A stretch of DNA of 64,000 nt from Guillardia theta CCMP2712 (taxonomy: Eukaryota; Protista; Cryptophyta): assembly GCF_000315625.1 (NCBI RefSeq), contig NW_005434663.1, forward strand, positions 649,882 to 713,881, given 5' to 3'. The number at the start of each line of letters is the position of its first letter. Within the stretch, counting starts at the first letter, position 1. The position numbers were made by a program, and so were the translations under genes. The notes beneath the pieces were generated by a model that had not been told where the DNA came from, did not search any database, and saw only the letters and a program-made list of their open reading frames with translations. This document shows positions 1 to 44,574 of this stretch, in pieces.

Positions 1-467
1 TTACCGACCTACCCCCATGACCAACCCCCTACCCCCACCCTTGGGTCTTCCAAGGCTGGCCTGCCTCAGAGGGCCGGATCGATGACCCGGACCCGCCGAC
101 GGACCGGGCCCATGAAGACTCGAACATCCCTGAGGCGAGCCTGACCAAATGGCTTGAGTGAAGTTCGGGTGGACCGAGTGCTTTAACCCCACCCCCTCGT
201 AAACGATGCAAGAGCAGGGAAGAAGGGGTAGGGGTGGCCACTCCATGTCAAGAGCCTCCGCCGAAAAATGGCGATGATCTGAGAGGAGTCGCATGGACGA
301 GGAGCGGTCGACCTCGAGCAGACGCGCAGCAGAATCCGCTGAGATTGGGAACTCTCTCCCCCTCCTCCTGGATCACTGACTCACAGGGTTGTACAAGACG
401 GTGGAACTGTAAGGCTTCCGGAGGAGATTCAATGAGTGGGTGAGCTACAGTGTGGAGGTAATTGAGA

Positions 468-27776: not shown

Positions 27777-30700
27777 ATGGATGTGTGCAAGTTGCTTATG
27801 CTAGACATTGAGGCAGCCGTCAGCGAGCTTTGTCATGATGATTCCGGATACACGATTGGATCCCTCGGAATCGCATTGGATGGATGTACGATCGTTGGAA
27901 TCATAGAAGACGGTCCAGCATTCCAGAGCGAGAAACTGAACCTGGGAGACAAGATCGTAAAAGTGGACGAGGTTCTTGTCACAGAGAGTTCGATCATATC
28001 CGCCATAGCAGGAGGCGAAGAGGAGCAGGTCGTGATCGAGGTTCAAAAGTCTACTGGGAGGAACGTCAAGGTGTGATGGGGGCCGGCATGAAGGGATGGA
28101 AGTGAAGTTGGCATGTGCAGGTGGAGTTAACGCGGGTGAAATCCCTTGACTTGATAGCCCTCCATGAGCTCTCTAGTCAAGTCAATCTAGCCGTTCACAC
28201 ATGTGAGAGAGGAGGAAGATGTGAACCTGCACGTGACGCCAGCTGGTGCAGGTGAACACCTGCAAGAGGAGCCGGAAAGCAGCAACGGGAGAAGAGTCTC
28301 GGACCTGATGGGCATTCTCGGGAATCTGACGGAACTTTTGAAGCGCTCCTACCACAAGGTGAGAGGATGACGACGTGTTCCTATATGCCATGACGCTCGT
28401 AAAGAGACAAAAAGCTAGCTCGAGTTATCTCTATCGTTTGCGACGGTCTCAAGAACGAATGTACGTCATGTTATGTTATGACGGCAACTGACGTATACAA
28501 TGATATGCGTGCAGGTCTTTGAATATCAAAGATCTGCAATTGCAAATGGAGAACATGAACACGTCGAATGAAAGTCAGATGCAAGATGCTATGGACGCCA
28601 GAGATAAGATCAAGCAAGAGTGCATTGATCTGATCAACCAGCTGCAGGTATGGTAGCGCACCTCTCGCTCCATGGCGTGCTGACAAACGGCATTTGCAGA
28701 TCTCTGAATCTGTGCTGAAAGGACTTGAATCTCAACTCAACAATGCTATGGTGATGCGATCGACCATGATTTGATGGATGCTCTTGACGTGTTCCAAAAG
28801 ATATCAATAGAAGAGAGACAGAGACGCCTCGATGAAGCGACGGAGCGGGAGAATTCTCTCAAACGAGAGATTCAAGAGCTTCAAGTGATGTACAAGCAGG
28901 TATTCCCTCTTCACAAGATGTCTTGAGAACATGATGGTGATGATCCAATGCAGGTTGTCGCAGGCCCGTCATCCATGGACAACGTTAGCCCAAATTTGCA
29001 TTGTCAGAAAGACATTGAATCCTTATGAAAACAGGAGGTGCAGCAATTAAAAGCAGAAATCAAAGAGAAGGAGGAAATAATCCAGGGAATGAAAAAGGAC
29101 TTCAGGTATTCTGAGTTTAATCAAGTTCTTGTGGATGTAATTGCGAGTACAGATCAAACTCTTCTCCTACAACTCATGATGGCATTCAAGGATTCAAGCA
29201 ACAACCCATTCACTTCCATCAACCAAACACACCGACACAGAATTCAAGTCACATCAATAAGGTCTTTTGGGATCAGCTGGCGATCCATGTGGATTTGACA
29301 GGAGTTTGGACAGGATGGAACTTGTTGGTGTAAGAACATCACGCCGGAATACGTGCAACATCTGGAGGTAAACCACAGTACCCGCATACTTTGGTGACGG
29401 CTGGTTGGCAGCTTTCAACAAGCACTTTGGAGAAAGCAGTCGAAACCTTGAAGTTTGAGACTGTCCATATGTCGCACGACTACAACAGATGCAAAAGGAA
29501 ATGCAACTCTCTGTTGACTGAGAGAAGCCTGATCCTCAAGGAAGGCGAGGAATGGAAGACCAAGGTAAATCCCAAGACGTGTGTGAACGTTAAAATGTGA
29601 TGAGTTTGCAGAACTCCAGCTTGCAGTCTGAACTTCGGAGATTGAGTTCAATGTCTCGATGATAAGATCGTGCTAATCGGTTTTGACTTGCTGCCAGCAG
29701 ACTTGAATCTCAGAGGGATCTTTTGGAACTCTCGTAACTTCATCTGATCACCGCAATCAAGCCATATGATTCACGCATGAACAGGTCACAAGAGATGAAT
29801 AACATACGTCAGCACATGCATGGAAGAGAAGAGAGCAAGGTAGAGATTATGTTTCAACTCAATTGTTTGATTGCTGTGTTCAGGCCGAAATCATGCACTT
29901 GAATACCACGAGACCTACAGCGAGAGCATCCGCATCTTCACCTTCGCTTGACACTTCTCTCAATCCTACTTCGAAGCGAACAGAGTTGTCCTTCATGGGT
30001 AGACGTTCCTGGCTCCTGTATGCTTGCAAGCCCTGATGTCCACACAGATCACCAGACGAGATCAAACTCAACAGAAACCAAAACTAACGCATGGTCCGCG
30101 AGTCTAAAAGAGCATACTCAGAGAAGCCCTCAGGCACTCCCTCGCTCAACCTGCTGCCTTGTGACTGATCCTTCCAGATCTCTCCCAACCCTCCTCCTGT
30201 TCAATATCTTGCCGGTTCGGGAGATTCTGCGGGAGAGCTGGTCTTTTCCAGCAGCACTGTGACTGTCTCTGTGTTTGCACTCTCAAGTTGATTGTGATGC
30301 AGTCTACCATTTCCTCTCAAACCTCAAAAGTTCCTTCACCCAGCAATCAGCGCGTGCAGACTGTCAAGACCTACTCCTCCATCCCGCATGTTCCACCCTC
30401 ACAACCGTCGGGCTACAACTCCTGGCACGGTGAGTTGAGGGTGGCAAGGTGAGTTCTCTCATGACGGAGATTGCAGCATCGCCATCCCCGTCGTTACATT
30501 CGTCTAATGACGGACGGAACTCGATTCAATCGTCTCCTGGCCCCTTGCATCGATCGTATGACAGGGGCGGGCAAGGCTCGCAGCAGGTTTACGCTAGGAA
30601 CGTTCAAGGTAGACTTTCACTGTCAAGGTTGGAAGAGTCACGCAGACGCTGCAGTGCTGGCAACCAACAACTTTCAAGTCGCCTACCCGCTCGGAGCACC

Positions 30701-30967
30701 GATGGTATGCGAGTTGTTGTGAGCGAGAGAAGATTGACCGGCATCAGGTGCACTATCAGCAACAATATGTGTCTGTGCCAGTCCAGGTCCCATATCAACA
30801 GCAACGTTCTATGCGAGTATCGGCAAGAGACAAGGTGCTGGAGAAGAGGGCTTGCGATCTCCTTCAGATCTCTCACGTCAATGCAGACAACGATGTGGCT
30901 GAGGGTGATGAACTCCGGGTATGTGGAATGATGACATGTGAGGTCATAGTATGGTCTTGTGCGCTGA
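27777..30967 (+). CDS. PDZ-domain plus long coiled-coil protein with a low-complexity tail (many exons; 3' end uncertain)
   Basis: PDZ: SLGIALDGCTIVGIIEDGPAFQSEKLNLGDKIVKVDEV. Heptad-rich exons follow (QQLKAEIKEKEEIIQGMKK; LEKAVETLKFE). Confidence 0.75.
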
Positions 30968-30968
30968 A

Positions 30969-31061
30969 GCTAAATTTCCTTCTTAAAGATATATTTCCTT
31001 GTCAAAGATATTTTTCTTTCTCAAGCTATATTTCCTTCTCAAAGATATAGTTTTCCTTGTC
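30969..31061. repeat. Imperfect ~18-19 bp tandem repeat x5 overlapping the stop codon of the NACHT gene
   Basis: Minus-strand units similar to GAAGGAAATATATCTTTGA. Confidence 0.75.
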
Positions 31062-34000
31062 CTGAACGCGCAAGATGATCACCTTCCCCTCCTGTTTGCA
31101 GTTGGATATCAGTTGAATCTTCTTCATAATGATCTGTTACCTTGGTTCCTAAAACGACTTTCCGTCCATCTGTCGGACAAATCGACCAGCTTGATATTTG
31201 ATAGTTCGGATGAAACGACGCAACCGTCTGACTTTGACGTGTTTCACGCACGATTCTATCGACCGCGTGCTCTTACCTGGCATCAAGATCGACTGCGTCA
31301 TCCTTCCGAAGCTGCCCAGAGCGTCAGGGTTTCAAAACGCCCGAGAGCTTCATGGCAACCTTGACTGAGTTGTCCTCCACAGTCACGAAGAGCCTTTGAC
31401 CGTCTGAAAGATTGATCCTCGGGACCTGATCTTCGATGAATGACACCTTGAGACGCACTTGTCCCAGGTCGTGTCCCTGTAAGAACCACTCTCAGATGCA
31501 TCCAGCACATCACTGCCTTACCACTGCATCGTTCTCGTCACACAGATCGAACCATCTGTCTATCTCCTGCTCATGTTTCAGGTCATTACATTGGGAATCA
31601 TATACAAACGGGCTGCTCCGCCAGTTGAAGGTGAGTTATCTCCAATTGGCCGAGGAAATCGTGATCTCCGACCAAATCATGGTCGAACACCTTAACTTGA
31701 ACATGCGGTGGACTTCTCAGTCCATAAAACGTAAACTTTTCGTTCCAAACCTGAGAGAGTTATTCCCCATCACTTTTCCCGATTGTGTTTCAAGAAACAG
31801 AGAAGATGCTTACAGGATTCAAAGTTTTCGGTCTGACTGACGTCTTCACCTCCAGAACCTCGTCATATCTCGACGTTCTTGAAATCTTTTGCGCTTCTGA
31901 AATCAAGATTTGAATTTTCTGCAAGAAGCATCTTAATTGTAGCAACACATGCTTGATCCTCACGTCAGGATAATCCGACTGCATCTCAGTAAAACGCCTT
32001 CTGGGGAGGGCCAGCAGGCTTGTGGCTCCTTCAGCTACAGCTGAGGCTTTGCTGGGCTGCCGCAGCATCAAGGCGATCTCTCCGATCACGTCGCCCTCCT
32101 CCAGCAAAGCGATCTCTTCCCCGTACGCGTTGAGGTTGGACTCCTGCTCGTCGATGCTCGTACCAACATGCATGTGCAGCTTTAGACTCCCAGACAAGAT
32201 CTGGTGGTCTGTGAGCAACACGACAAGACGGAGGTGACATGTACCATGTACATGGAGCTGTAGTACTCTCCCTGGAGGAACAAATGTTGACGATCGGACA
32301 ACTCGACTATATCCGACTTTGAAACCACATACTCGAGCTGTTCGTCAAACAACTCGAACAGCTTCGCTTTCTTCTTGCGCATGAGCGCCAGTGCCTTGGA
32401 GTACAACGGATGGTCTGCTGACCTGAGATCCTGGAAACTTTGACCAGGTAGGCTACGAAAGAAGGTCAGGCTGGATCACGAGCGAGCGGCTGCCTGACCT
32501 CTCGAGCTCATCGGACTGGTTGGTGAGGTTGATGACGACGAACGGGTCTGAAGTTCCCGACGCGTCCGCGGCCAACAGCTGACGTGCCTGCAGCACTTCT
32601 ATAACCTGCAAGCAGATCAGTAGCAGTTCCTCGAGTAGCGACTGCCACCAGAGTTCTCGGCATCATTGCGCTCCTGCTGTCAGGTCGTCTGTTCTGGATC
32701 TGCTCTTTTCTCTCGACCTTTCTCAGCACTTTGCTGGCCAGCAACCGCACTCGTGGCGAGCTGCTGGAAGCGAGCTGAATGAGCGTCTGAACCACCTACA
32801 AGTCGAGATGGAATCACGAGTACTGCGAGGTGCTGAAGATTGTGAAGGCGACAAGGGTGAGAGTTCGTACCAGTCTCGACGACTTTGTGAGTCTAGAGAG
32901 GACCATCAAAGTTTGACATACTAGAGTCTCATCGTCGCGCTCAAGGAGGGGAAGTAGCACCTGAATAGCCTGCAGATCAAAGAAGACAACCAGTGAGATA
33001 CGAGCTATCATGGTTCAATTCATGTCCCTCTCACCAAAATGTTGATTGACGGGATTCCAAGCATTCCCAGAGCAAGGTGTTTTCTCAGAAGCTTTTGTTT
33101 ACCTATCATGGATAGCAGGCTCCGTTCCATCTGGAAGAATTCGCTCGCAGGATCTTCAGTGCTCTGCAACGCATCTAGAAGGAACAAGGACAAGGGAACC
33201 GATTCATGTGTGACCTAGAAAGAGAACATCCTTCATGTCATTCATACAGACATGCTCAGAAACATCAAGTCAGCTACCTCTCCGTTGTCTGATTGCGACG
33301 TGTCTCCTTCCAGTGCTCCATGATTCGACGTCGCATCTGCCGTGACGTCATCGGGAGTCTTGTTTTCATCATCGTCGAGTGTTCTCTTGCTCTCTGAGGT
33401 CGTCGACTGCTCTGCATTCGCGTCACTCTCAGCATCCTCAGCTCTTGGCTGCTCGAGCTCGCGCAGCAGCATGGTATACTGCCACAAGCCAGCAGCCTCC
33501 TTCCTCAACCCTTCCGATGCTTGGTTGCCCTCAACAGCATGCCCCTGAACTTCAGCAATATCGCCTTGGGACAGCATGTCTGTGAGCTGAGAAACTGAAG
33601 TTTCTTCGGTTGCTTCATCTTCTGCTTCATCTTCTGCTTCATCTTCTGCTTCATCTTCTGCTTCATCTTCTGCTTCATCCTCGGCTACTTCACTTGTTTC
33701 CTCGATGGTATCAGGACCTTTGCGTTGCTCATTGTCTATCTCGGAGTTGATGGCTAACTCCAACTGCTCGTCAGACAGGGCCATGTCGTCGGCATGTTGA
33801 GCTAGGAGGGCGAGGAAGGGCGAGGGATCAGCCTCCTCGTGCACCTCCCAGTCCATCACCTCGGGGAAGATCACATCTGAGATGGAAGCGACGTCAGCAA
33901 TCCGCCCGACGAGTCGACAAGAGGAGGCCTCCCATATCAGGCATCCGAACTTGTGCAACGTAGCGATGTATCCCCCGTCCTGCGAGAACTTGCAAGCAGC

Positions 34001-37000
34001 TGCTGGGTCGCTCGCGTCGCACAGGTGGTGAACTATCAGCGTCTCTGCGTTCCAGTCGAGCACTCGGACATGTACACCCCCGTCCGCGGCTTGCGAGATC
34101 AAGTTGGTCCCGTCGCGCGAGATTTCAACATGAACAACTTCCATTGAGTGGCTGGTGGTCGTTTGCAGGGCGATGCCATGGGCGATGGAGGGGTCGTAGA
34201 GTAGCACGCTTCCTTGCGCTGTCGACACTGAGATCAATCTTCTTGTTGTACAGAAGGTGATGCCGCAGATGGTCGAATCGACTTTCCCGAGATTCAGCGC
34301 CATGTCTTGCGAGTTGAGGTCGAGGTGGAACAGGGTGCCGTCGACAGATCCCATCGCCAGAGTTTCTCCTTGAGCATCAAACTCACAGCAAACGATCGCA
34401 GAGTCATGGAACGCGATCGTCTCTGACTCCACGTACTGATGCATGTCCCAAAGTTTGATGGTGTTGTCACTGGAGCAGGAGACGAGCAATTGTTGACTGG
34501 CAGAGTAAGCAAGGTCGTAGATGATACCTTGATGCTCCTCGAGTTGATGTCTCTGTTCGCCAGACTTGGCAGACCACACCCGAACAGTCTTATCGTAAGA
34601 CCCTGAAACCACCTCGTCCCTTTGCTCCACCAGCACGCAAGCCGTCACCGCAGACTGATGGCCTAGGAAGGTGAGCTCGACTTGCCCTGTGACGATGTTC
34701 CACCTCCGCATGCTGCTGTCCCCCGACGCCGTGATGACTCGATCCTGATGGTAGAAGACTCCGTCCAGCACTTCCCCCTCATGCCCTTCCAGCCTGACGT
34801 CCAGCGCTCCTGACCCTGTGTTCCACACGCAGGCGGTGAGGTCAGCAGAGGTCGTGAGGATCCTCGAGTTGTCCTTGGAGAAGCAGCAGTGCAGTATCGC
34901 CTCCCCGTGGCACTCGATCTCCCGCGCTACCCTCCCGGTCTTGTAGTCGTGCAGTCTGATCAGCCCGTCCGCCCCGCCCATCATGACCAGGTCGTCTCCC
35001 AACGAGTAGGTCACACTGAACACGCCGGAATGGTGGTCGAGTAGAACCCTCAGCAAGGGGTCGACGTTCTCGGTCTTGTTTGCGATCTCAAACCAGACGT
35101 CAGGCACGATGCAATGATCCTTGGCTGTCGGCTCGAGGATGTTGAGAGCGTCTTTCACAAGGCCATTGTCGCCATTTGCAGTGCTATTCACCGCACTTTG
35201 AAAGGTCTGCAAGGGTTCGATTTGCAAAAGAGATTTGTTCTTGAGAACGAATTCAAAATACATCGCAATGCAAGTATTCCTCGGATACAAGATGCTCCCA
35301 ATCATAAGATCGTCGCAAAATTGATTGATCAGGCCAGCAATGCAGGCCGCATGAATGAATGGAATGGTACATACCTCTCGCTCAAACCTCGTTTCCCCCA
35401 TGTCTGCTTTCTTGACGTGTTCATTCGATTTCGCGTACTTGGTTGCTCTTTCAACTGGATCTACCCCTGACCCTTCGAAGCCACCCAGGGCATAGATGTG
35501 ATAAGGCAGCTCGCGCAGCTTCCTGACGTTCACCATGAATCGCTCGCCCACTCGCTGAAAGATGATGGGTTGCGCGTCTTCGACTTTCATGCTCCCCTCG
35601 TGATCCTCTTGTATGGTCGGATGATTTGATTCATCACTTGCTGCTTGTCCGCTGAAGTAGAGGTACTCGATCTCATGAAAGAAGTTCCTCGTCTCGAGAC
35701 TTGTCAAGTTGTATCGCCTGACGACAAACTCAGTAGCCAAGGAGTTGTTGGTCTTGATGCAGGTGTAATTCTCAACCCAGAAGTCTCTCAGGAAGGGTCC
35801 AAGATCTCTGTGCTTCATGTCAGTGTGTGAAGGCAACTCTATCGACATCACCTCTGAAGCAGAAACGTCTGCATGGCGGGGAGGGACTGGACCTCTGGGC
35901 TGAAGCTCCCAAAGAATTCCTCCATGGACTCGCTACAGAGAGACAAGATGTCAGCGAGCTCAGCCCTTGTGAGACCATCTCTAGCAAAGAGGATCGCAGA
36001 GAGAAAGTCAGTGACCAGCCTCTTCCCCCTCTTCTCTTCTACTCTCTCGATCATGTAGTTGTACATCCCATCGAACGAGGTTGGGAGCTTCAATTGAGTG
36101 TCAAAGGAGCGCCATGCAGAAGAAGCTTCAATGCACAGCGAGACGAAGAGGGGGAAGCAGGAGAGCGCTTTCTGCCCGACACTCTCGAAGCTTTGGACGG
36201 CATTCTTGATCGCTTCGTAGTGATCAGGATGAACGTTTCTGTGCTGAACTTCCAGGTGGCGAGAAATCAAAGTCGAGGCATCAGATGATTTCAAAGGCTC
36301 GATCCTCATGAACACTTCTCCGGAATACAAGTCGCTCAGGGCATCCAGACACTCCTTGGACGTGCTCCTGACCGTCACCACCACGCTGCTGTGCTGCGGC
36401 AGCGTCTTGGGCAACCAGGAGAGAGCCTCGGTGAAACCGAGGTAGCTCTCGAGCTCCTCAAGGGCATCGACCAAGACGGCTATCGGCTCCTCGGCAGACG
36501 CGTATTGTAAGAGCTTCAAGAACAGATCCCTCTGCTTCAAGACGTCGCCGGTCAGCCCCGCTAGAGTGTTGTCTTGCATGTAACCTGTGACTGAGCACAG
36601 CTGACGACAGAGGCCATGCAGCAGCTCTGAGGGGTTGAGGCGATGCAAGGAGGAACCAAGGAACCTGTAGATCACGCACGAGCCCTGGACCTGCTGCTTG
36701 AAACGAGAGCCTACCTGACTCAGCAGAGAGGTTTTGCCGACTCCAGGTTGTCCAATCACAAAGAGCGGTTGATTCTTCAGCCCCCACTTGCGCTGGTTTT
36801 CTCCTTTCATGTACTCCAGCAGCGTTTTGAGCTCCTTGGTCCTGCACTCAAAGCCAAGACAATGTTTGACTGCCATCTCCAATTCAACGGAGATGTCTTT
36901 GTAGCGAAGCTCGTTATCTTCAGTTCTCCTTACATCATGAGCGATTCTCTCATGCGTTATCGAAGCAATATCCTCTGCGAACAAGGAGAAGTGCTGATCT

Positions 37001-40000
37001 TCGTCTATCCCGATCTCATGCGGCTTTCGTTTCTTCCACCTGTAGGCGACAACTGCGGGCGACAGCTCCCAGCTCTGCCGGTCTTGTGAAGTCAGCATGG
37101 CAGTGGGGGTGCGCACACGGAGAATGTCCATGCGCTCTTTGACAGAAGGGAAGACGCCTTTCAGCCGCCTCAGCAGCTCCGGTTGGGACATGAAGTAGTC
37201 CCTACAGGCCTCATGAGAGAGCGCAGCGAAGATTCCGAAGGAGCTGAAGGTTGTGACGGTGAAGGTCTTGGGGGTCTGAAACAGAAACGATTGTTCCCCC
37301 ACAGCATCCCCTGCCTTGAGGAACCCGGTGTTTTCATGGCCAGCGCCTGCCTGATGCAACAGGATCTGAAAGTCTCCTCGCAAGACGATGATCATGCAAT
37401 GCTGACCATCTTGCTCGTTGGCGATAATGTCTCCTCTCTTTGACCTCCTGATCCTGCAGCACGAGACCAGGAATTCCAGCTCTTCAGGGGAAAGCATCTT
37501 GAATAGGCTCGACTTCCGTTTGAAGATTGCTCTCCGCAAGCGGAATCGATGAACCTTCTCCTCCATCCCCTTTGTCGCATCACTTGCAGTTTCCTTCGCC
37601 AGCAGACTTTTCAGCAAGGACTTGTCCATCTCAAGGAGCGAACATCGCCTAGTCGCGGTCACGTTGTAGGCTCGTTCCTCATACGGCTGATAGACAGTCA
37701 GCCCGAGCAGTTCGCCTACCCTTTGACTTCTTTCAACCTCCAGCTGCTTGTCTGATTCATCCGAGTCGATCGTGATGCTGATTTCGCCGTCAATCAGCAT
37801 GTAGACGCAGTCTCCGAAAGGTCCCCAGCCCCTGACGTCACTTTGAGACTCCTTCCATACCTCGCAAGATTCCTCCACCGTCACGAGCCATGCTTGCCGC
37901 AGGACCTTGTCAAACGCCTCAGCTCCGAGAGCAGCTGGGTTGAGTTGACTGGCTTCCAGGGCTGAGAACCAAGAGGCTTCGCTGATCTCACTCACTGTAA
38001 GCTTTCTTCGCTTGCAAACGGACTGGAAGGAAACCAGCTCTCTCTTGATCTCCCCACTCCTCCCTAACAACTCGCCGGAATCCTGGCAGTTCACTTGAAA
38101 GAGCATCGCGTCTGAAACCAAATCGACTTGATACTGCAGGTTGGCTTCTCCGAACAAATGCATCTCCCCAAAAGCAGACCCTTCCTCTATCAGGAAAGCT
38201 TGCTGATTGCCTTGAGAGTCGAGGTATGTCACTTTACACTTGCCAGATAGCAAGACGAAGAACGATCTTTCGATCTCAGATTGCAGAGGCAAAATTGAGA
38301 GCTCAGACTCTCGGATACTCGCCTCTATTGACGATTTTTCTATGATATTCTGCACATTGTTCAACCTTCGCTGTAAATTTTCAATTTTCATCAGAGCATC
38401 ATTGAGTAGCTTTGATGTTTCCTCCAAATCAGTCGAGGCTCTATCTAGAATTCGCACTGAATCGGAGGATCCTATTTGAACCTTCTTCTTTGATCCGAGT
38501 TGACAGATTTGATAGAGCTCTGCAAGGCTCATGATCCTCAAGATCGTACTCCGACGAAACTTTAATGTTTGCATGACCCCGGCAACATCCTCATCTGCAG
38601 CCTCTAGTTTCTCTTCCAGTTGCAACAAATCCTCATCGTTCACGTTGCTCTTGTTCGACAAATGATGGAATATCATTGCTTTCAGCTCTGACATGCTATA
38701 CGGCAAATCTCTATTTACCTTCTGGTACACTTCCAAATACTCAGCTAAGCTGCTCTTTCCTAGCGAGATTGCATTGGATTCATCGTGATCCCACAGAAGA
38801 GCAAAACATTTTGATTTTGCTTCCTCCTCTCCCCTTGACAACAAACCTTCGAACGCTTCTACAAACTCCAATGTCTCCGTGAAATATTTACAATGCTGAA
38901 TGTCACCAACCTGACTGCCCGCCCTTGACTTCTTGGCATCAAGGAGGAGTCCTTCAATCATCAGAAGAAACTCCTCAAAGTCAATGGTCCCACTCCCATC
39001 TTCATCGAAGTCTTTCAGGAACTCACTGATCTCATTCTGCCCCAGATGAATTCCAAGCTGCTCGAAGGCAATGATCAGCTCTTCGCTGTCTATCAAACCT
39101 GAATTGTCTGAATCTATCTCATTGAACAATGCTTTCACCCTTCGTTTCATGCTCGAACTATCCAAGACTCCGAGCTTCCCTAGAATAGCATCTCTCATGA
39201 TTTGTTTCTGCTTCCCAATGACCTGCTGCACACAAGCGTCATGAAACCCATCCTGCATCAGGTCGAAAGCCTTGGTCCACGCCTCATTCCCTTTGTCCCG
39301 CAACTGTGAAGATTTGCTTCTTCGGGAAGATCGATTCGAAGGGTCGACGAGGACGTAACAGCTGGGATCACTGTTTGTGTCCAGTCGAAACCATTCCAGC
39401 ATTGCCTTTCTTCTCTTGACATTTTGTCCATGATCTCCCATTGTGAGAAGGATTGATTCGAAGTGCTGCTGATCTATCTTTCTGGGAAAGGCTTTTCCAT
39501 TTGAAGAGCTTCCCAGCAAGCAGATGTAGTCCATGCTGCAAGAGGCATCCTGGCAAAACAGTCGGAGATCAGAGCAATCCTCATGAAGCTCAAGGTTGAA
39601 CTGATAGTTGTGAGATGGCGGCAACAGATGCAGAGGATCAAAGATCTCTAACTCAAACCCCCACGATCGCGCTAGGGTTCTCAGCCCACGTTTCAGATGG
39701 CCGCAGATGAAGTTTCGTTCTTCCTCGTGCTCTTCCAAGGAAGAGCTGACGTATATGCAGATGACATGCTGCTTGACTTGTCTGCGGTACTGAAAGTCTC
39801 CTTTGAGAATAGGGTTAACATGATTTACAAGACGATTCGCATTCTCTTCCTCCTCTTGTGAGATCGCCTGATCGAAGTCAGCTTTTAACTCTTCAGGGTT
39901 AGAGTTTGACTCGGATGCCAAAGACACGAGCTCGTCTCCCACCATTGCAATCTGCTCGTCAATGTATCGAATCCAGTGCTCGTTCCCAGATGCATAGACT

Positions 40001-41667
40001 AACGCCTTTGTTTTCTGAAAATCTTCCTTCGCACGAAGGAAGTGAAAAGAAGCTTTTGAAAGTCTTCCTTGCTGTATCTTTTCTAACGCATCATTGAACA
40101 AAAGAGAAGCCTCTTCCAATTTCATCAGCATCTGTTTCAGAGATGAGACTTCCTGGCATTTTCCAATCTCCGCACAATTTTCATACATCGTAAGACATTG
40201 ATCTGCTGCAGAGAGCAGAGCAGCAACGCTAGTTTGCAATATTTGTATATCTTTCGAATGCACTCTAGCGTATATTGTCTGCAGTTGACTATTCGCATTT
40301 CGGAGAATTACCTCTTTTCTCTGCATGGCAGTCTTTTTGCTCTGCAAGACATTTTGCGTCAAGTTCAAGTCAGATATTATGCTTGCCAATTGCGTTGCAT
40401 CATTGTAATGATCGATGGACTGAGCCACCCTTTCTGAGTCCAACATTCTCTGACCCGACTGCATCACGTCATCTAACCTTGCCACCTTATGCAACCTCAA
40501 AGTTGTTGACACCGTGAACAACAACCTCTCGATTCTCTCCGCCATTGTCTGTTCCCCGAGGCCGCTGATATTCCCTTTGATTGAGCGCAACATGTCAACG
40601 CACTCTTGGATGGATACCGCAGGCAACTCCTTGCACAGCTCAACAATGGCAGCAAGAGCCTTCAAGTACAGCAAGATGGCTTCTAGTCTGCTCAGACTCT
40701 GACTCTGAGTTGTTGCTTCCACTCCAGCTTCAGCAGCAGCCATCGGAGCAGGTACACGATGACTCATTCTGAAGTAAGAGAGTACCTTTACATGTGATCC
40801 GTTCGGACAATCTGAAAACAGGATTGCAACAACTCCAGGGAATTTGATATTTGTGATTTGAAAGGGAATTCTTCGGCTCTGCTTGTAAAAGTACAGGGAT
40901 CCTGCGTTCTCCTCATAGTCGAACTCGAGGCCGAGGGTATCGCCAGTGTCCAGCCTCCAGGAAGAAGCGTCGATAGACATGAGAACAGTCTCGCCGTTGC
41001 AGAGGTCTCCATCACTCGAGAGAAAGAAGGCCCTGTCATTGAAGTCTTCTTCAAACCAGTAGTCCCCTACCTTGACCGATTCCCCGTCCACCACCCCAAA
41101 GAAGAATTCTACCTTGCTGTCCAGGACGAAGTTTCCTACCTGAATCTCGCAGTATACTCGTCCCTCCTCGAGTGGCTTCCCCAGAAAGATGCTACGAACA
41201 GCTGCTGCTTCAGCGCACTGAATCAAGTTCTCCTTCACCGACAGCGATACGTGCTTCGTCTGCTGTGACCAGGGTTGGAGGTTGGCGGGGGCAGGAGCGA
41301 TGGGTGCGCTGCTTCCCCGATACTCCTGCAGGAACAGTTGGACGGAAGAGCTGACCAGTTGAAGCTGTGCGAGGAGAGAGTCAGAATCTATCCCGTGCAG
41401 AGACTTGTCGAACTCTCCTTGAACTCGATCTAAAACCTTGATCGCCTCTGCTTCTTTTGATCCGATCGCTGACTGAAGCTCTGCAGCTTCTTCTTTCAGC
41501 TTCTGCAGCTCCCTCCTCCTGCTCTCTTCCTCCGCGTCTCTCGGCATCTTCTCCTCAGCTTCATCTAGCAGTACCAGCGTCTTGCCGACTTCGCCATCAC
41601 TCAGCAGACCCTTCGCCTTTTGTATGGCCTGATCCCAAGCCTTTCGCTTCGATTGACCGCCCCCCAT
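31026..41667 (-). CDS. Giant NWD/TEP1-like STAND NTPase: SPRY, DUF4062/NWD-N-like, EF-hands, cNMP-binding x4, NACHT, WD40, ARM, C2
   Basis: Walker A GQPGVGKTS and Walker B IAVLVDALEE. EF loops DSDNSGLIDSEE and DEDGSGTIDFEE. GH...WN/WD repeats. ORFs 35848-41667 and 33242-35851 are joined by a 44-nt GT-AG intron (35808-35851). The 3' exons encode ARM, C2, cNMP and a final WD blade ending ...GTKEGKVIILRVQDKENYIFEKEI*. Confidence 0.85.
33611..33682 (-). repeat. Coding 12-bp tandem repeat encoding (EDEA)6
   Basis: TGCTTCATCTTC units on the + strand. Confidence 0.9.
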
Positions 41668-42009: not shown

Positions 42010-44574
42010 ATGGTGCGACGGAAGTTGACAATCGTGGTGCTTGCTTGCTGTCTCCTCGTCCTTCCTGCTCCATGCGTGGGATCGGAAACCGAGGAGGAGT
42101 GCTCGAAGGTGTACATGGACACAGTGGAGGACGAGGCCTCCGGTCTCCCAACATTTGCGACTGCGATGCCGAGCTTTCTGCTTGATGTCACTCGCTGTGT
42201 TGCAGGAGACGAGCATCATGGAGTGAACGAGGCGCTGGCAAGCAGAGGCTCCCTCGCCATCTCCGGCTTTGAGCAGCGAGGATATGAAGCCGTTCAGGCC
42301 ATCGATGGGGTCTCAGGAGCCTCTGACAATGGATGGGCTTACTTGGGTCGGTTGGATGAGGCTTGGTTGATGGTCAAATTTCCGATGGCGACGGTGACGA
42401 GCAAGATGAACTTGTGCTCGGGATATGAAAGAGTTGATCATCACATCACGAGATTCATCCTTCTATTCACTAACATGACCTTCGACAACGTAGAGGAAGC
42501 CAGAGGATCGGACCCGCTGCTTGCTGGATCGCCATGGTACGTGATTCCAGGGTTGAGGGGAATAGGCGAATCAGTGAAAGTGCAGGAGGACGGGTACACA
42601 GTGAAGGTGAAAGGAGGCACAAGTGAACTTGTGCTCACATACCCGCGACTAGAAGCGACCATGTTCTATGTGAAGATCGAAGAGAGCGACACGGCAGATA
42701 CGGAAAATGCTGTCGTCAACGAGATCGAGTTTCTGCTCGAAGAAGAGCTCTTCTCGTGGACTACATGCACCATGGAAGTATACCTGGACAACGAGCTCCT
42801 AGTGAATCACTCACGCACCATCTCGTTGCTGCCCCTCCATAGGGGAGAGACAGCGGGAGAGAGCCCCACAGACAGGGTGCTCCGCGTCTCCCTCCCCAAC
42901 ATCAATGGAGTGCATGAGCTGCGCGTGCAGCTAGGAGTTCCGTTGGAGCATGTGCACTTTCTGGTCTATGACAAGTTGAACCAGGCGCTACAGACGTACG
43001 TGGCGTTTCCCTACCCCAACTTTGTCTTCGGTCGTGACATGCAGCCGTTCGTGACAGTGGGCGCGAGCGGTCGGCAGTGTATCGGAGATGCTCCTCTGGA
43101 CAACTCGACGGGCTTTTGCTGGCACCAGCCCCACCAGACCTATTATGTCAACCTTGACATCATGCCCTTGGCTTTCTCTGGGGAAGCTGATTGTGCTGCC
43201 TGGCTGTGGAGGGCAGGTCACCGTATCTGCACAAAGACTTGCACTCGAGCTTCATCGGAAGGAGGGCATGAGTACTGCTGCGATTTGAAGCACTACGCGG
43301 TAAAAATGCGACAAGGAAGATACGTTGGGTTGAGCTGTCTTCCGGATGGGGAGTATGTCTTGTTCGTTCACTTCTACGACTACTTGCAACAATTCGACTC
43401 TGTGCATGAAGTAAAGATCACGATCGACCGAAGTGATATTGGTAGGTGGTATCACAGAGCGTTGGCGAGCAACGCGTCGTACCTTGACGTCATCGACGAC
43501 TCTCATGTTCTACGAGAGCAGAATGGAAGCTTTGAGTTTCACTTGCACAAATCTGAAGTAGGAGGAACCAGCGGGTCTACTTTGCTGTATGCTCTTGTGA
43601 TCCCTGATGTGGATGTTTTGCTGGCAAAGGAGCGAGAAAAGCTCGCGATCGAGATTGACGGCATTGCTTCTTCTTGTAAGTTGGATTCTTTCAGAAAGTC
43701 AAGACCTGAAAGCCAGTACGAATGTTTCCTTCTCGATGTCGTGCCGGATGAGTATCAAGACAAAATCGAAATCAATCTCTTGCAGTTCGCTGCTACCTAC
43801 CGACGTGTCCTTGCTTGGTGCCTGCACTTCAGAGCGTTCATGGCGCGAGAGTTTCTTGAATCAAGTTTTGCGGGAAGAACATTGAGCGCAGCTCTCATGA
43901 CGTTGCCGCTGACGATGGACAAATCATGCCTCGAAGTTTCACCTCAGAGAATCTCCGTCAACCTCGGGGAGTTCTCGTGGAGCAGCGCCAGTCATTCTCA
44001 GCTGGGCGCGAGACACGCACCAGACGTGAAGATTCATGAAGAGATCCTCAAGATGGTAGGCTGGAGCGACGAGCAAGAAGCAATGACCAACGTTCTTATC
44101 TTCGGGCATCTCTTCAGACCGAATCGCCTCTTCAAATCCCTGATCCTCTCCAAGCGCCTCGAACTAGGTATCTCCGGTGTCACCGTGGGGATTCAACTCT
44201 ACCAGGTGGCTCGTGTTTCTGAAGAAGCTTTCAATGTCTTCTGCCGGCAAGTGACCGATCTCGTACGGCACTATCAAGCTCAGACCGTCATTCTTCTTTC
44301 TGAGGACACGACAATACCACGAATCCGATCGATCGCAAGTTTCGTCCAAGCCATGGAAACGAAATCCGTGCTCCTACAATTTAACGGAATCGTAGAAACA
44401 GGAGATGAAGCAAGTAACGACTTGCAAATTATCTCACTGTTCTTGTTCCTTGAATCTTCTCAGTATATCTTGGCATGCTGTAACGAGATGTCTAGATTGC
44501 TGCTTGAGCTTGTAATTTCAAATGCAAAACATCGCAAGATGAACGTTTCTCTGTATGATTTCAACAATCTTTGA
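42010..44574 (+). CDS. Intronless secreted/signal-anchored protein with a discoidin/F5-8-like N-domain and a degenerate GT23 (FUT8/NodZ)-like C-domain
   Basis: 854-aa ORF with a signal peptide. AVQAIDGVSGASDNGWAY...WLMVKF...HITRF...VNEIEF is discoidin-like. TVGIQLY...VILLSED...LFLFLESSQYILACCNEMSRLLLEL resembles the GT23 C-terminal pattern. Confidence 0.7.
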   Translation: MVRRKLTIVVLACCLLVLPAPCVGSETEEECSKVYMDTVEDEASGLPTFATAMPSFLLDVTRCVAGDEHHGVNEALASRGSLAISGFEQRGYEAVQAIDGVSGASDNGWAYLGRLDEAWLMVKFPMATVTSKMNLCSGYERVDHHITRFILLFTNMTFDNVEEARGSDPLLAGSPWYVIPGLRGIGESVKVQEDGYTVKVKGGTSELVLTYPRLEATMFYVKIEESDTADTENAVVNEIEFLLEEELFSWTTCTMEVYLDNELLVNHSRTISLLPLHRGETAGESPTDRVLRVSLPNINGVHELRVQLGVPLEHVHFLVYDKLNQALQTYVAFPYPNFVFGRDMQPFVTVGASGRQCIGDAPLDNSTGFCWHQPHQTYYVNLDIMPLAFSGEADCAAWLWRAGHRICTKTCTRASSEGGHEYCCDLKHYAVKMRQGRYVGLSCLPDGEYVLFVHFYDYLQQFDSVHEVKITIDRSDIGRWYHRALASNASYLDVIDDSHVLREQNGSFEFHLHKSEVGGTSGSTLLYALVIPDVDVLLAKEREKLAIEIDGIASSCKLDSFRKSRPESQYECFLLDVVPDEYQDKIEINLLQFAATYRRVLAWCLHFRAFMAREFLESSFAGRTLSAALMTLPLTMDKSCLEVSPQRISVNLGEFSWSSASHSQLGARHAPDVKIHEEILKMVGWSDEQEAMTNVLIFGHLFRPNRLFKSLILSKRLELGISGVTVGIQLYQVARVSEEAFNVFCRQVTDLVRHYQAQTVILLSEDTTIPRIRSIASFVQAMETKSVLLQFNGIVETGDEASNDLQIISLFLFLESSQYILACCNEMSRLLLELVISNAKHRKMNVSLYDFNNL

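Follow-up and report, generated by a model that had tools for sequence, protein, structure and literature searches.

A predicted NWD1/TEP1-class STAND ATPase of the cryptophyte Guillardia theta with EF-hand, cyclic-nucleotide-binding and C2 domains in one chain

In the usual description, NLR-like STAND ATPases act as receptors, the repeat domains of which bind proteins or microbial molecules. What, then, would act on such a protein if domains of the kind that sense Ca2+ and cyclic nucleotides were built into the same chain as its NACHT domain? This question is raised by a minus-strand gene at positions 31026..41667 of a 64,000-nucleotide (nt) stretch of Guillardia theta CCMP2712 DNA (contig NW_005434663.1, positions 649,882 to 713,881; hereafter the window), for which a first-pass annotation, made from the letters alone, had proposed a single spliced gene of ~3,300 amino acids (aa) combining these parts. 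The analysis described here indicates that the encoded protein belongs, judged by its sequence, among the NLR-like STAND ATPases of the NWD1/TEP1 class, with a combination of sensor domains that is previously undescribed as far as searched. Second-messenger gating of NACHT oligomerisation in a membrane-recruited STAND switch would be its likeliest mechanism, and we put the probability of this reading at roughly 0.55.

The locus is a single expressed gene of this cryptophyte alga. Before splicing, two long minus-strand open frames are visible (41667-35848, 1,939 aa, and 35851-33242, 869 aa), with many short ones downstream. Refinement of the splice sites gave 15 exons and 14 GT..AG introns of 43-75 nt each, and the exons join into one open frame of 3,307 codons, which begins with an ATG at 41667 and ends with a single stop at 31026-31028, close to the length first estimated. 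Public runs X1, X2, X13 and X18 were compared with positions 30400-36300 of the window. All 14 introns were found as CT..AC (plus-strand) joints in X1 contigs and mostly also in X2, and the DNA run X13 reads straight through every one of them, which demonstrates that X1 and X2 are RNA-derived and that the joints are introns. Separate genes ending near 33240 or 35850, an outcome that the first-pass annotation had allowed for, were rejected, as spliced contigs from two studies bridge both introns (at 35807/35852 and 33212/33276) and extend for 138-255 letters to either side of the joint. An in-frame stop lies 3 codons upstream of the ATG, and the extent of an X1 contig corresponds by arithmetic to a 5' untranslated region (UTR) of at least ~100 nt. 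Introns are unevenly spread, with one (44 nt) in the first 8.4 kb and 13 (43-75 nt) in the last 2.2 kb; the part that encodes the ARM-like repeats, the C2 domain with its cyclic-nucleotide-binding (CNB) domain and the tail could have been added from a separate, intron-rich gene.

The core of the NWD1/TEP1 class, namely an NIR/DUF4062 module, NACHT, a winged helix, a helical domain and WD40 repeats, is found in this protein (Table 1). The NACHT domain, which had been located from a Walker A motif at ~36730, was recovered by Pfam, and its nearest annotated relatives are NWD1-like proteins, for example from Ptychodera flava. The HTH_NWD1 family, matched marginally behind it, is also on record for an environmental orthologue (L015). 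The WD40 repeats were recovered as predicted, and many propeller families in Pfam, those of the TEP1 propellers included, match the region. Since the Walker A, Walker B and sensor-1-like motifs are intact and are followed by the NWD1-type winged helix and WD40, an oligomerising switch would fit the architecture.

In recent preprints DUF4062, or NIR, is reported to be a TIR-like NADase in which one Glu is indispensable. It stands N-terminal of NACHT in NWD1, NWD2, TEP1 and NPHP3, of which TEP1 is NADase-active and the other three are inactive in vitro, and by analogy with Apaf-1 an activation sensed through WD40 is proposed there (10.64898/2026.05.01.722283; 10.64898/2026.09.04.749371). A module of this type had been predicted for the present protein. 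The Pfam DUF4062 family (PF13271) itself gave no match to it. However, a phmmer search from P0067, a Pfam-verified DUF4062-bearing NWD1-like protein, found aa 634-800 at E 1e-8, and hhalign aligned a profile of the cryptophyte-type modules with one of 16 NWD1-type modules over 207 columns (probability 99.5%, E 3.8e-23). The low-confidence AlphaFold2 (AF2) model displayed a beta-alpha-beta-alpha start and a hairpin; a shape search of Atlas ranked a DUF4062 cluster first, at a TM of only 0.37/0.48, and the Foldseek PDB and VIA-wide searches with a model of NIR plus EF-hands were filled by EF-hand proteins and are uninformative on the NIR part. The module retains the SS-x...ERN strand and the W..D.N..P..Y hairpin, and it lies ~800 aa from NACHT rather than adjacent to it.

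Three motifs that are invariant or nearly so in the NWD1-type alignment, D-x-R-W-G, R-Y-G and S-x-T-E-x-E, are all missing in this protein, in its counterpart from Hanusia and in the environmental orthologues, as judged by both MAFFT and hhalign. Residues 816-830, which align to S-x-T-E-x-E, contain no Glu at all; its columns are occupied by Gln according to MAFFT and by Lys or Ile according to hhalign, and the counterpart of the catalytic Glu positions TEP1 E1008 and PsAvs2 E108 is missing. NADase activity of the module is unlikely because this Glu is absent, and an active NADase effector was rejected as a candidate. A paralogue in the same genome, the canonical NIR-NACHT locus L019 (G000:C49:302000-305000, minus strand), keeps D-L-R-W-G, R-Y-G and S-V-T-E-R-E intact; the loss of the catalytic motifs thus appears to be specific to the present gene family, and L019 may encode a cryptophyte NLR with active NADase. 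Despite the motif loss, the module of the present protein has 75% identity between two genera, which argues for a retained non-catalytic role.

Around this core, the sequence predicts three sets of lineage additions. Upstream stand a myristoylation-type N-terminus, a coiled/helical arm and a SPRY domain; the space between the NIR-like module and NACHT is taken up by a pair of canonical EF-hands and by three CNB domains; and the WD40 propeller is followed by an acidic linker, by HEAT/ARM-like repeats and by a C2 domain, one loop of which would hold a fourth, nested CNB domain. The EF-hand pair and the first three CNB domains had been anticipated at ~38960-39130 and ~37170-38560, and both groups were recovered by Pfam close to these positions. 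Both EF loops match D-x-D-x-S-G-x-I-D-x-x-E, with acidic or polar residues at positions 1, 3, 5, 9 and 12 and Gly at position 6, and the pair has a calmodulin-lobe fold (VIA Z 13.5, root-mean-square deviation 1.5 A to calcyphosine). Ca2+ sensing would fit the canonical form of both loops and the conservation of the pair, which exceeds that of every other part of the protein. Pfam cNMP_binding (PF00027) matched three stretches of 37153..38370 (E 3e-24). In the genome scan CNB1 to CNB4 scored 33.8, 27.3, 34.7 and 36.9 bits against a curated cut-off of 27.5, which CNB2 reaches only when its in-frame neighbours are added (28.5 bits). By phmmer, the CNB domains match structures of PKG and PKA-R (E 1.4e-6).

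The C2 domain and CNB4 had been described as standing in series. Both domains are present, but since Pfam C2 positions 5-33 and 49-90 flank the CNB match in spliced order, C2 appears to be interrupted by CNB4 (~170 aa) rather than followed by it. The C2 loops contain the acidic motifs D-x-x-G-x-S-D-P-F and D-x-D-x-x-x-D-x-D. The flanking regions hold up less well: for the predicted ARM repeats, HEAT and HEAT_2 matched exon 5 only, below cut-off (E 0.016-0.021), and the several final WD blades are reduced to at most one, as phmmer hits to the last ~60 residues (E 0.003-0.03 in a 168-sequence set) all fall in WD40 regions of NWD1-like proteins. The acidic (EDEA)6 linker was borne out by the translation and by Tandem Repeats Finder (TRF); Asp and Glu make up 31% of it, and it is poorly conserved.

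At the opposite end, MGGGQSK fits the N-myristoylation consensus and its seven residues are identical in Hanusia phi; in line with the first reading, the N-terminal Gly may be myristoylated. The SPRY domain, proposed at ~40770-41250, was recovered by fold. Language-model features (Atlas) scored it 0.96, with SPRY in 76/100 matches, and the top 50 Foldseek PDB matches of an AF2 model of aa 120-330 (pLDDT 62) were all SPRY/B30.2 (E 1.5e-6 to 4e-5, probability 1.00, TM about 0.5); the region had no Pfam match and a PDB sequence-profile search was also empty. Of the helical/TPR-like character proposed near the N-terminus, the helical part stands and the TPR part found no support: aa 306-633 gave no Pfam match and aa 311-630 no usable Atlas feature match. 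A Pfam search of the N-terminal 640 aa and of aa 620-850 returned no SPRY, DUF4062 or TPR match.

Is this arrangement a peculiarity of one genome? The best protein matches are two fragments of Hanusia phi in EukProt, P0001 (aa 1-1534, 66% identity) and P0002 (aa 1589-2842, 62%), which together reach aa 1-2842. The per-domain identities to Hanusia are high against the 31% of the linker, and all folded parts therefore appear to be under constraint. Metagenome contigs L011-L016, from uncultured eukaryotes (ENA ERZ24794600/615/583; JGI 3300050205 and 3300052917), supply at least two further divergent versions with 22-35% identity that are colinear over aa 139-2217, and in the genes called on them Pfam EF-hand, cNMP_binding, nSTAND1 and WHD_NWD1 follow one another as they do here. 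By sequence, then, Guillardia shares the architecture with Hanusia and with two or more environmental lineages. Only one copy of the gene is present in its own genome (87.1 Mb, 669 contigs), in which the window is part of contig 11 and a paralogue search with aa 640-1838 gave only generic EF-hand and weak NACHT matches. An exhaustive HMMER search with the same residues against 1.84 billion representative proteins returned, among the best 150, the same architecture in the two Hanusia fragments only, which cover the EF/CNB part and the NACHT part separately; the remainder were a few NIR-like plus EF-hand fragments and proteins with EF-hands or NACHT separately. A weak protein with a single CNB and NACHT could score below these 150, so that absence elsewhere is not proven. 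Full-text literature searches on NACHT and protist NLR architectures found no description of the arrangement, in agreement with the first-pass annotation, which knew of none, and the DUF4062 preprints mention neither cryptophytes nor EF-hand/cNMP fusions (10.64898/2026.05.01.722283; 10.64898/2026.09.04.749371).

Across the genome, Pfam matches NACHT at least 17 times, DUF4062 at least 6 times, in several cases beside a NACHT, and cNMP_binding at least 150 times; the last count points to an unusually large cyclic-nucleotide sensor repertoire. Six cNMP_binding matches lie in one frame on contig C107 (9.7-12.3 kb). Among the NACHT and cNMP matches listed, this gene is the only place where the two come within 10 kb of each other.

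How might these parts work together? In the gating mechanism that we favour, the protein would lie on, or be recruited to, a membrane via its myristoyl group and the C2 domain. Ca2+ would bind the EF-hand pair and C2, and the CNB domains might at the same time take up a cyclic nucleotide or a ligand related to one. Ligand binding would lift the autoinhibition of NACHT and lead to nucleotide exchange and oligomerisation, as in Apaf-1, and the output would probably be scaffolding via the conserved, catalytically dead NIR-like module and the SPRY, WD40 and ARM surfaces. Membrane association is probable, because the myristoylation-type start is kept in Hanusia and the acidic loop pattern of C2 fits it. 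The first-pass annotation had suggested a signalling or immune-like switch. The membrane, Ca2+ and NACHT features fit such a switch; as a single-copy conserved orthologue with an NIR-like module that lacks the catalytic Glu, the protein seems closer to a signalling switch than to an immune receptor of the diversifying kind.

Several observations weigh against this mechanism. The cassette of CNB3 reads P-K-T-F where Plasmodium PKG has P-R-T-A, so that the key Arg is replaced by Lys; CNB2 has Arg-Ala (E-R-A-Y) in a lengthened loop; CNB1 and CNB4 are without the cassette Arg; and cAMP/cGMP binding in this species may be weak, altered or lost. The model of the NIR-like part is of low confidence (pLDDT 32-70 over the first 110 residues), the nesting of CNB4 in C2 is built from Pfam matches to single exons taken one at a time, and the C2 aspartates that may be equivalent to synaptotagmin D172/D178/D230/D232/D238 serve as a lead only. 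The evidence for a single transcript has a gap of ~10 nt at the (EDEA)6 repeat, and the raw RNA reads of X18 number only 7, too few for transcript ends, strand or expression level. The cassettes in particular would be expected of a switch driven by Ca2+ alone, with the EF-hand pair and C2 as the only messenger sensors and the four CNB-fold domains reduced to a structural or autoinhibitory role without cyclic-nucleotide binding; the CNBs are also the least conserved folded domains (56-66%, against 87% for the EF-hand pair). We consider such a switch unlikely but worth keeping in view. All four CNBs reach the curated Pfam score, CNB2 with its neighbours; the Lys of CNB3 is shared by both genera together with its flanking P-x-T-F-T; and CNB2 of Hanusia has Arg-Ser (E-R-S-F). 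The early caution about cyclic nucleotides was well placed, as the cassettes are non-canonical here, and an environmental orthologue nevertheless has R-T in CNB2 and a canonical P-R-S-S-T cassette in CNB3, which together make it plausible that nucleotide binding by the CNB domains is ancestral.

Other readings would place the protein among immune effectors or scaffolds, or would dissolve it altogether. The NIR-NACHT-WD40 core is an NLR-like architecture, NIR is an NADase in Avs2, Vulcan, Vesta, Swarozyc and TEP1, SPRY domains frequently have a role in immune recognition, and this genome has at least 17 NACHT and at least 6 DUF4062 loci, all of which would suit an immune or cell-death NLR. In such a protein, as in TEP1 and the NIR-Avs of bacteria, a pathogen or danger signal would activate NACHT, and NIR would then use up NAD+ or produce a signal molecule. 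That role is improbable here, given the loss of RWG, RYG and the catalytic Glu in every orthologue compared, their retention in a same-genome paralogue, the lack of in vitro NADase activity of NWD1, NWD2 and NPHP3, and a single-copy gene that is colinear across divergent taxa, unlike diversifying immune receptors. NPHP3, which is myristoylated and targeted to the cilium, suggests instead a static flagellar or cortical scaffold, in which myristoylation would select the compartment and NACHT would be a structural nucleotide-binding domain without switching; the myristoylation-type start, helical arm, NIR-like module and P-loop with its NPHP3_N match recall that protein, and SPRY, WD40 and HEAT/ARM offer many protein-binding surfaces. 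With Walker A, Walker B and sensor motifs intact, however, and the NPHP3_N match confined to the P-loop region, we regard a mere scaffold as quite improbable. Finally, two or three neighbouring genes might have been misread as one, or the assembly might be chimeric: the RNA contigs break at 33640-33650, intron density changes abruptly, and no search of a protein collection returned the full-length product of 31026..41667. The break is the sole one, however, and falls inside the perfect 12-nt x 5.8 repeat; the DNA assembly is broken at the same repeat, the frame is open across it and the depth on its two sides is equal (148.9 versus 151.4). Hanusia P0002 crosses both the repeat and the first intron site, and together with the contigs that bridge the two suspect introns this leaves an artefact very improbable indeed.

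Table 1. Features of the gene in window coordinates, with their basis and identity to Hanusia phi.
Feature	Position	Strand	Basis or remark	Identity to Hanusia
MGGGQSK then RK, N-myristoylation-type motif (Gly2, Ser6) with basic patch	41647..41667	-	translation	
SPRY/B30.2-fold domain (aa ~140-305)	40753..41250	-	predicted fold	
Helical region, no family match (aa 306-633)	39769..40752	-	colinear in environmental orthologues	65%
Degenerate NIR/DUF4062-like (TIR-like) module (aa 634-835)	39163..39768	-	phmmer, hhalign	75%
EF-hand pair, two canonical 12-residue loops	38953..39141	-	Pfam EF-hand_7 E 6.4e-12	87%
EF loop DSDNSGLIDSEE	39079-39114	-	canonical loop	
EF loop DEDGSGTIDFEE	38971-39006	-	canonical loop	
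CNB1	38023-38370	-	Pfam cNMP_binding	56-66% (CNB domains)
CNB2	37552-37905	-	Pfam cNMP_binding	
CNB3	37153-37515	-	Pfam cNMP_binding	
NACHT NTPase	36253..36768	-	Pfam NACHT E 2.1e-12, 47.6 bits vs cut-off 26.7; NPHP3_N E 1.9e-10	73%
Walker A GQPGVGKTS	36727-36753	-	motif	
Walker B VLVDALEE	36454-36477	-	motif	
TVR, sensor-1-like	36364-36381	-	motif	
NWD1-type winged helix after NACHT	35914..36069	-	Pfam HTH_NWD1 (PF25469) 28.0 bits vs cut-off 27, marginal	
Helical domain	35054-35806	-	precedes WD40 blades	
About nine WD40 blades	33914-35041	-	Pfam WD40 E 2.5e-35; blades counted by eye	79%
Acidic linker with (EDEA)6	33278..33826	-	translation; 12-nt x 5.8 perfect tandem repeat 33611-33679 (TRF)	31%
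HEAT/ARM-like helical repeats, tentative (exons 3-5, aa 2783-2924)	32649..33214	-	weak Pfam	
C2, N-terminal part with DASGTSDPF loop	32501..32605	-	Pfam C2 positions 5-33, exon 6, E 3.1e-5, 24.5 bits vs cut-off 22	
CNB4, nested within C2 (exons 7-8)	31964..32409	-	Pfam cNMP_binding positions 34-86, exon 8, E 1.2e-9; 36.9 bits in genome scan	
C2, C-terminal part with FDHDLVGDHD (end of exon 9 to exon 12)	31387..31870	-	Pfam C2 positions 49-90, exon 10, E 1.5e-7, 32 bits	
C-terminal tail, one possible WD-like blade, tentative (exons 13-15)	31029..31311	-	weak phmmer	
Introns 1-7 (plus coordinates)	35808-35851, 33215-33277, 32970-33034, 32796-32870, 32606-32648, 32453-32498, 32201-32244	-	GT..AG	
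Introns 8-14 (plus coordinates)	31919-31963, 31751-31813, 31567-31609, 31477-31521, 31312-31359, 31232-31276, 31092-31140	-	GT..AG	

The surroundings of the gene yielded three further observations. The only database protein of the locus that was returned is P0020 (38971-39165, minus strand), an NCBI-sourced fragment of 65 aa with the very sequence of the EF-hand pair. A divergent neighbour, an 854-aa open frame at 42010-44574 on the plus strand, lies head to head with this gene, with 343 bp between its start and the ATG at 41667, and matched no Pfam family at E <= 0.01. Just downstream of the stop, a plus-strand GT..AG joint (30429-30475) in the X1 and X2 RNA contigs suggests a convergent neighbour gene, the 3' region of which may approach or overlap the 3' UTR of the present one.

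The NWD1/NWD2/TEP1/NPHP3 branch was linked to an enzymatic module only in the preprints of 2026, and in three of its four human members no activity was seen and no trigger is known. The present gene would be a natural, conserved member of the branch in which the NIR catalytic residue is lost and predicted Ca2+ and cyclic-nucleotide sensors are built in beside NACHT, and it offers a testable idea of how such proteins are gated and of what a non-catalytic NIR domain does. In its boldest form, which we put forward tentatively and regard as doubtful, this would be the first NLR-like STAND switch activated by intracellular second messengers rather than by a protein or microbial pattern: Ca2+ on the EF-hand pair and C2, and a cyclic or related nucleotide on four CNBs, would directly license NACHT oligomerisation at a membrane, with the dead NIR (TIR-like) module as an assembly or adaptor surface. 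If true, it would show how the NWD1/NWD2/NPHP3 branch can work without NADase activity. The C2 domain with a nested CNB would also extend the range of domain arrangements known so far. The alga does not lend itself readily to genetic manipulation, and function is inferred throughout.

Among known systems, NWD1, NWD2 and TEP1 resemble this protein in having an NIR-like module, NACHT, an NWD1-type winged helix, a helical domain and WD40 in the same order, with profile-profile homology of the N-terminal module and TEP1 propeller families matching the WD region. In contrast to them, it has ~800 aa (the EF-hand pair, a linker and three CNBs) between the NIR-like module and NACHT, a 630-aa extension upstream with the myristoylation motif, helical region and SPRY, and a downstream addition of acidic linker, HEAT/ARM-like repeats and C2 with nested CNB; it also lacks the NIR catalytic Glu, and Pfam DUF4062 does not match it. 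NPHP3, which counts with NWD1 and TEP1 among the human proteins that bear DUF4062, likewise has a myristoylation-type start and a helical/coiled region, together with an NIR-like module that is borderline and the P-loop of a STAND ATPase. Unlike the present protein, it ends in TPR repeats rather than WD40 and has no EF-hand, CNB, C2 or SPRY. The bacterial proteins NIR-Avs2, Vulcan, Vesta and Swarozyc share a homologous N-terminal NIR/DUF4062 domain, fused to a STAND ATPase in Avs2, and are active NADases with a catalytic Glu (E108, E98, E103), whereas here the Glu and two further conserved motifs are missing.

The Apaf-1 apoptosome has the same succession of a STAND ATPase and WD40 propellers and is a model for ligand-relieved autoinhibition and ring assembly, but its ATPase is NB-ARC instead of NACHT, its effector is a CARD, cytochrome c binds its propellers and it has no second-messenger domains. 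The CNBs of PKA-R, PKG and CRP have the same fold as those found here by Pfam and phmmer, and in PKA-R and PKG they are likewise in tandem; in this protein, however, the cassette Arg-Thr/Ser is non-canonical and the CNBs are attached to NACHT rather than to a kinase, channel or DNA-binding domain. Finally, Pfam C2 matches on both halves and the acidic loop motifs liken the C2 domain to those of synaptotagmin and PKC, from which it differs in being interrupted, after the second strand of the profile, by a CNB of ~170 aa.

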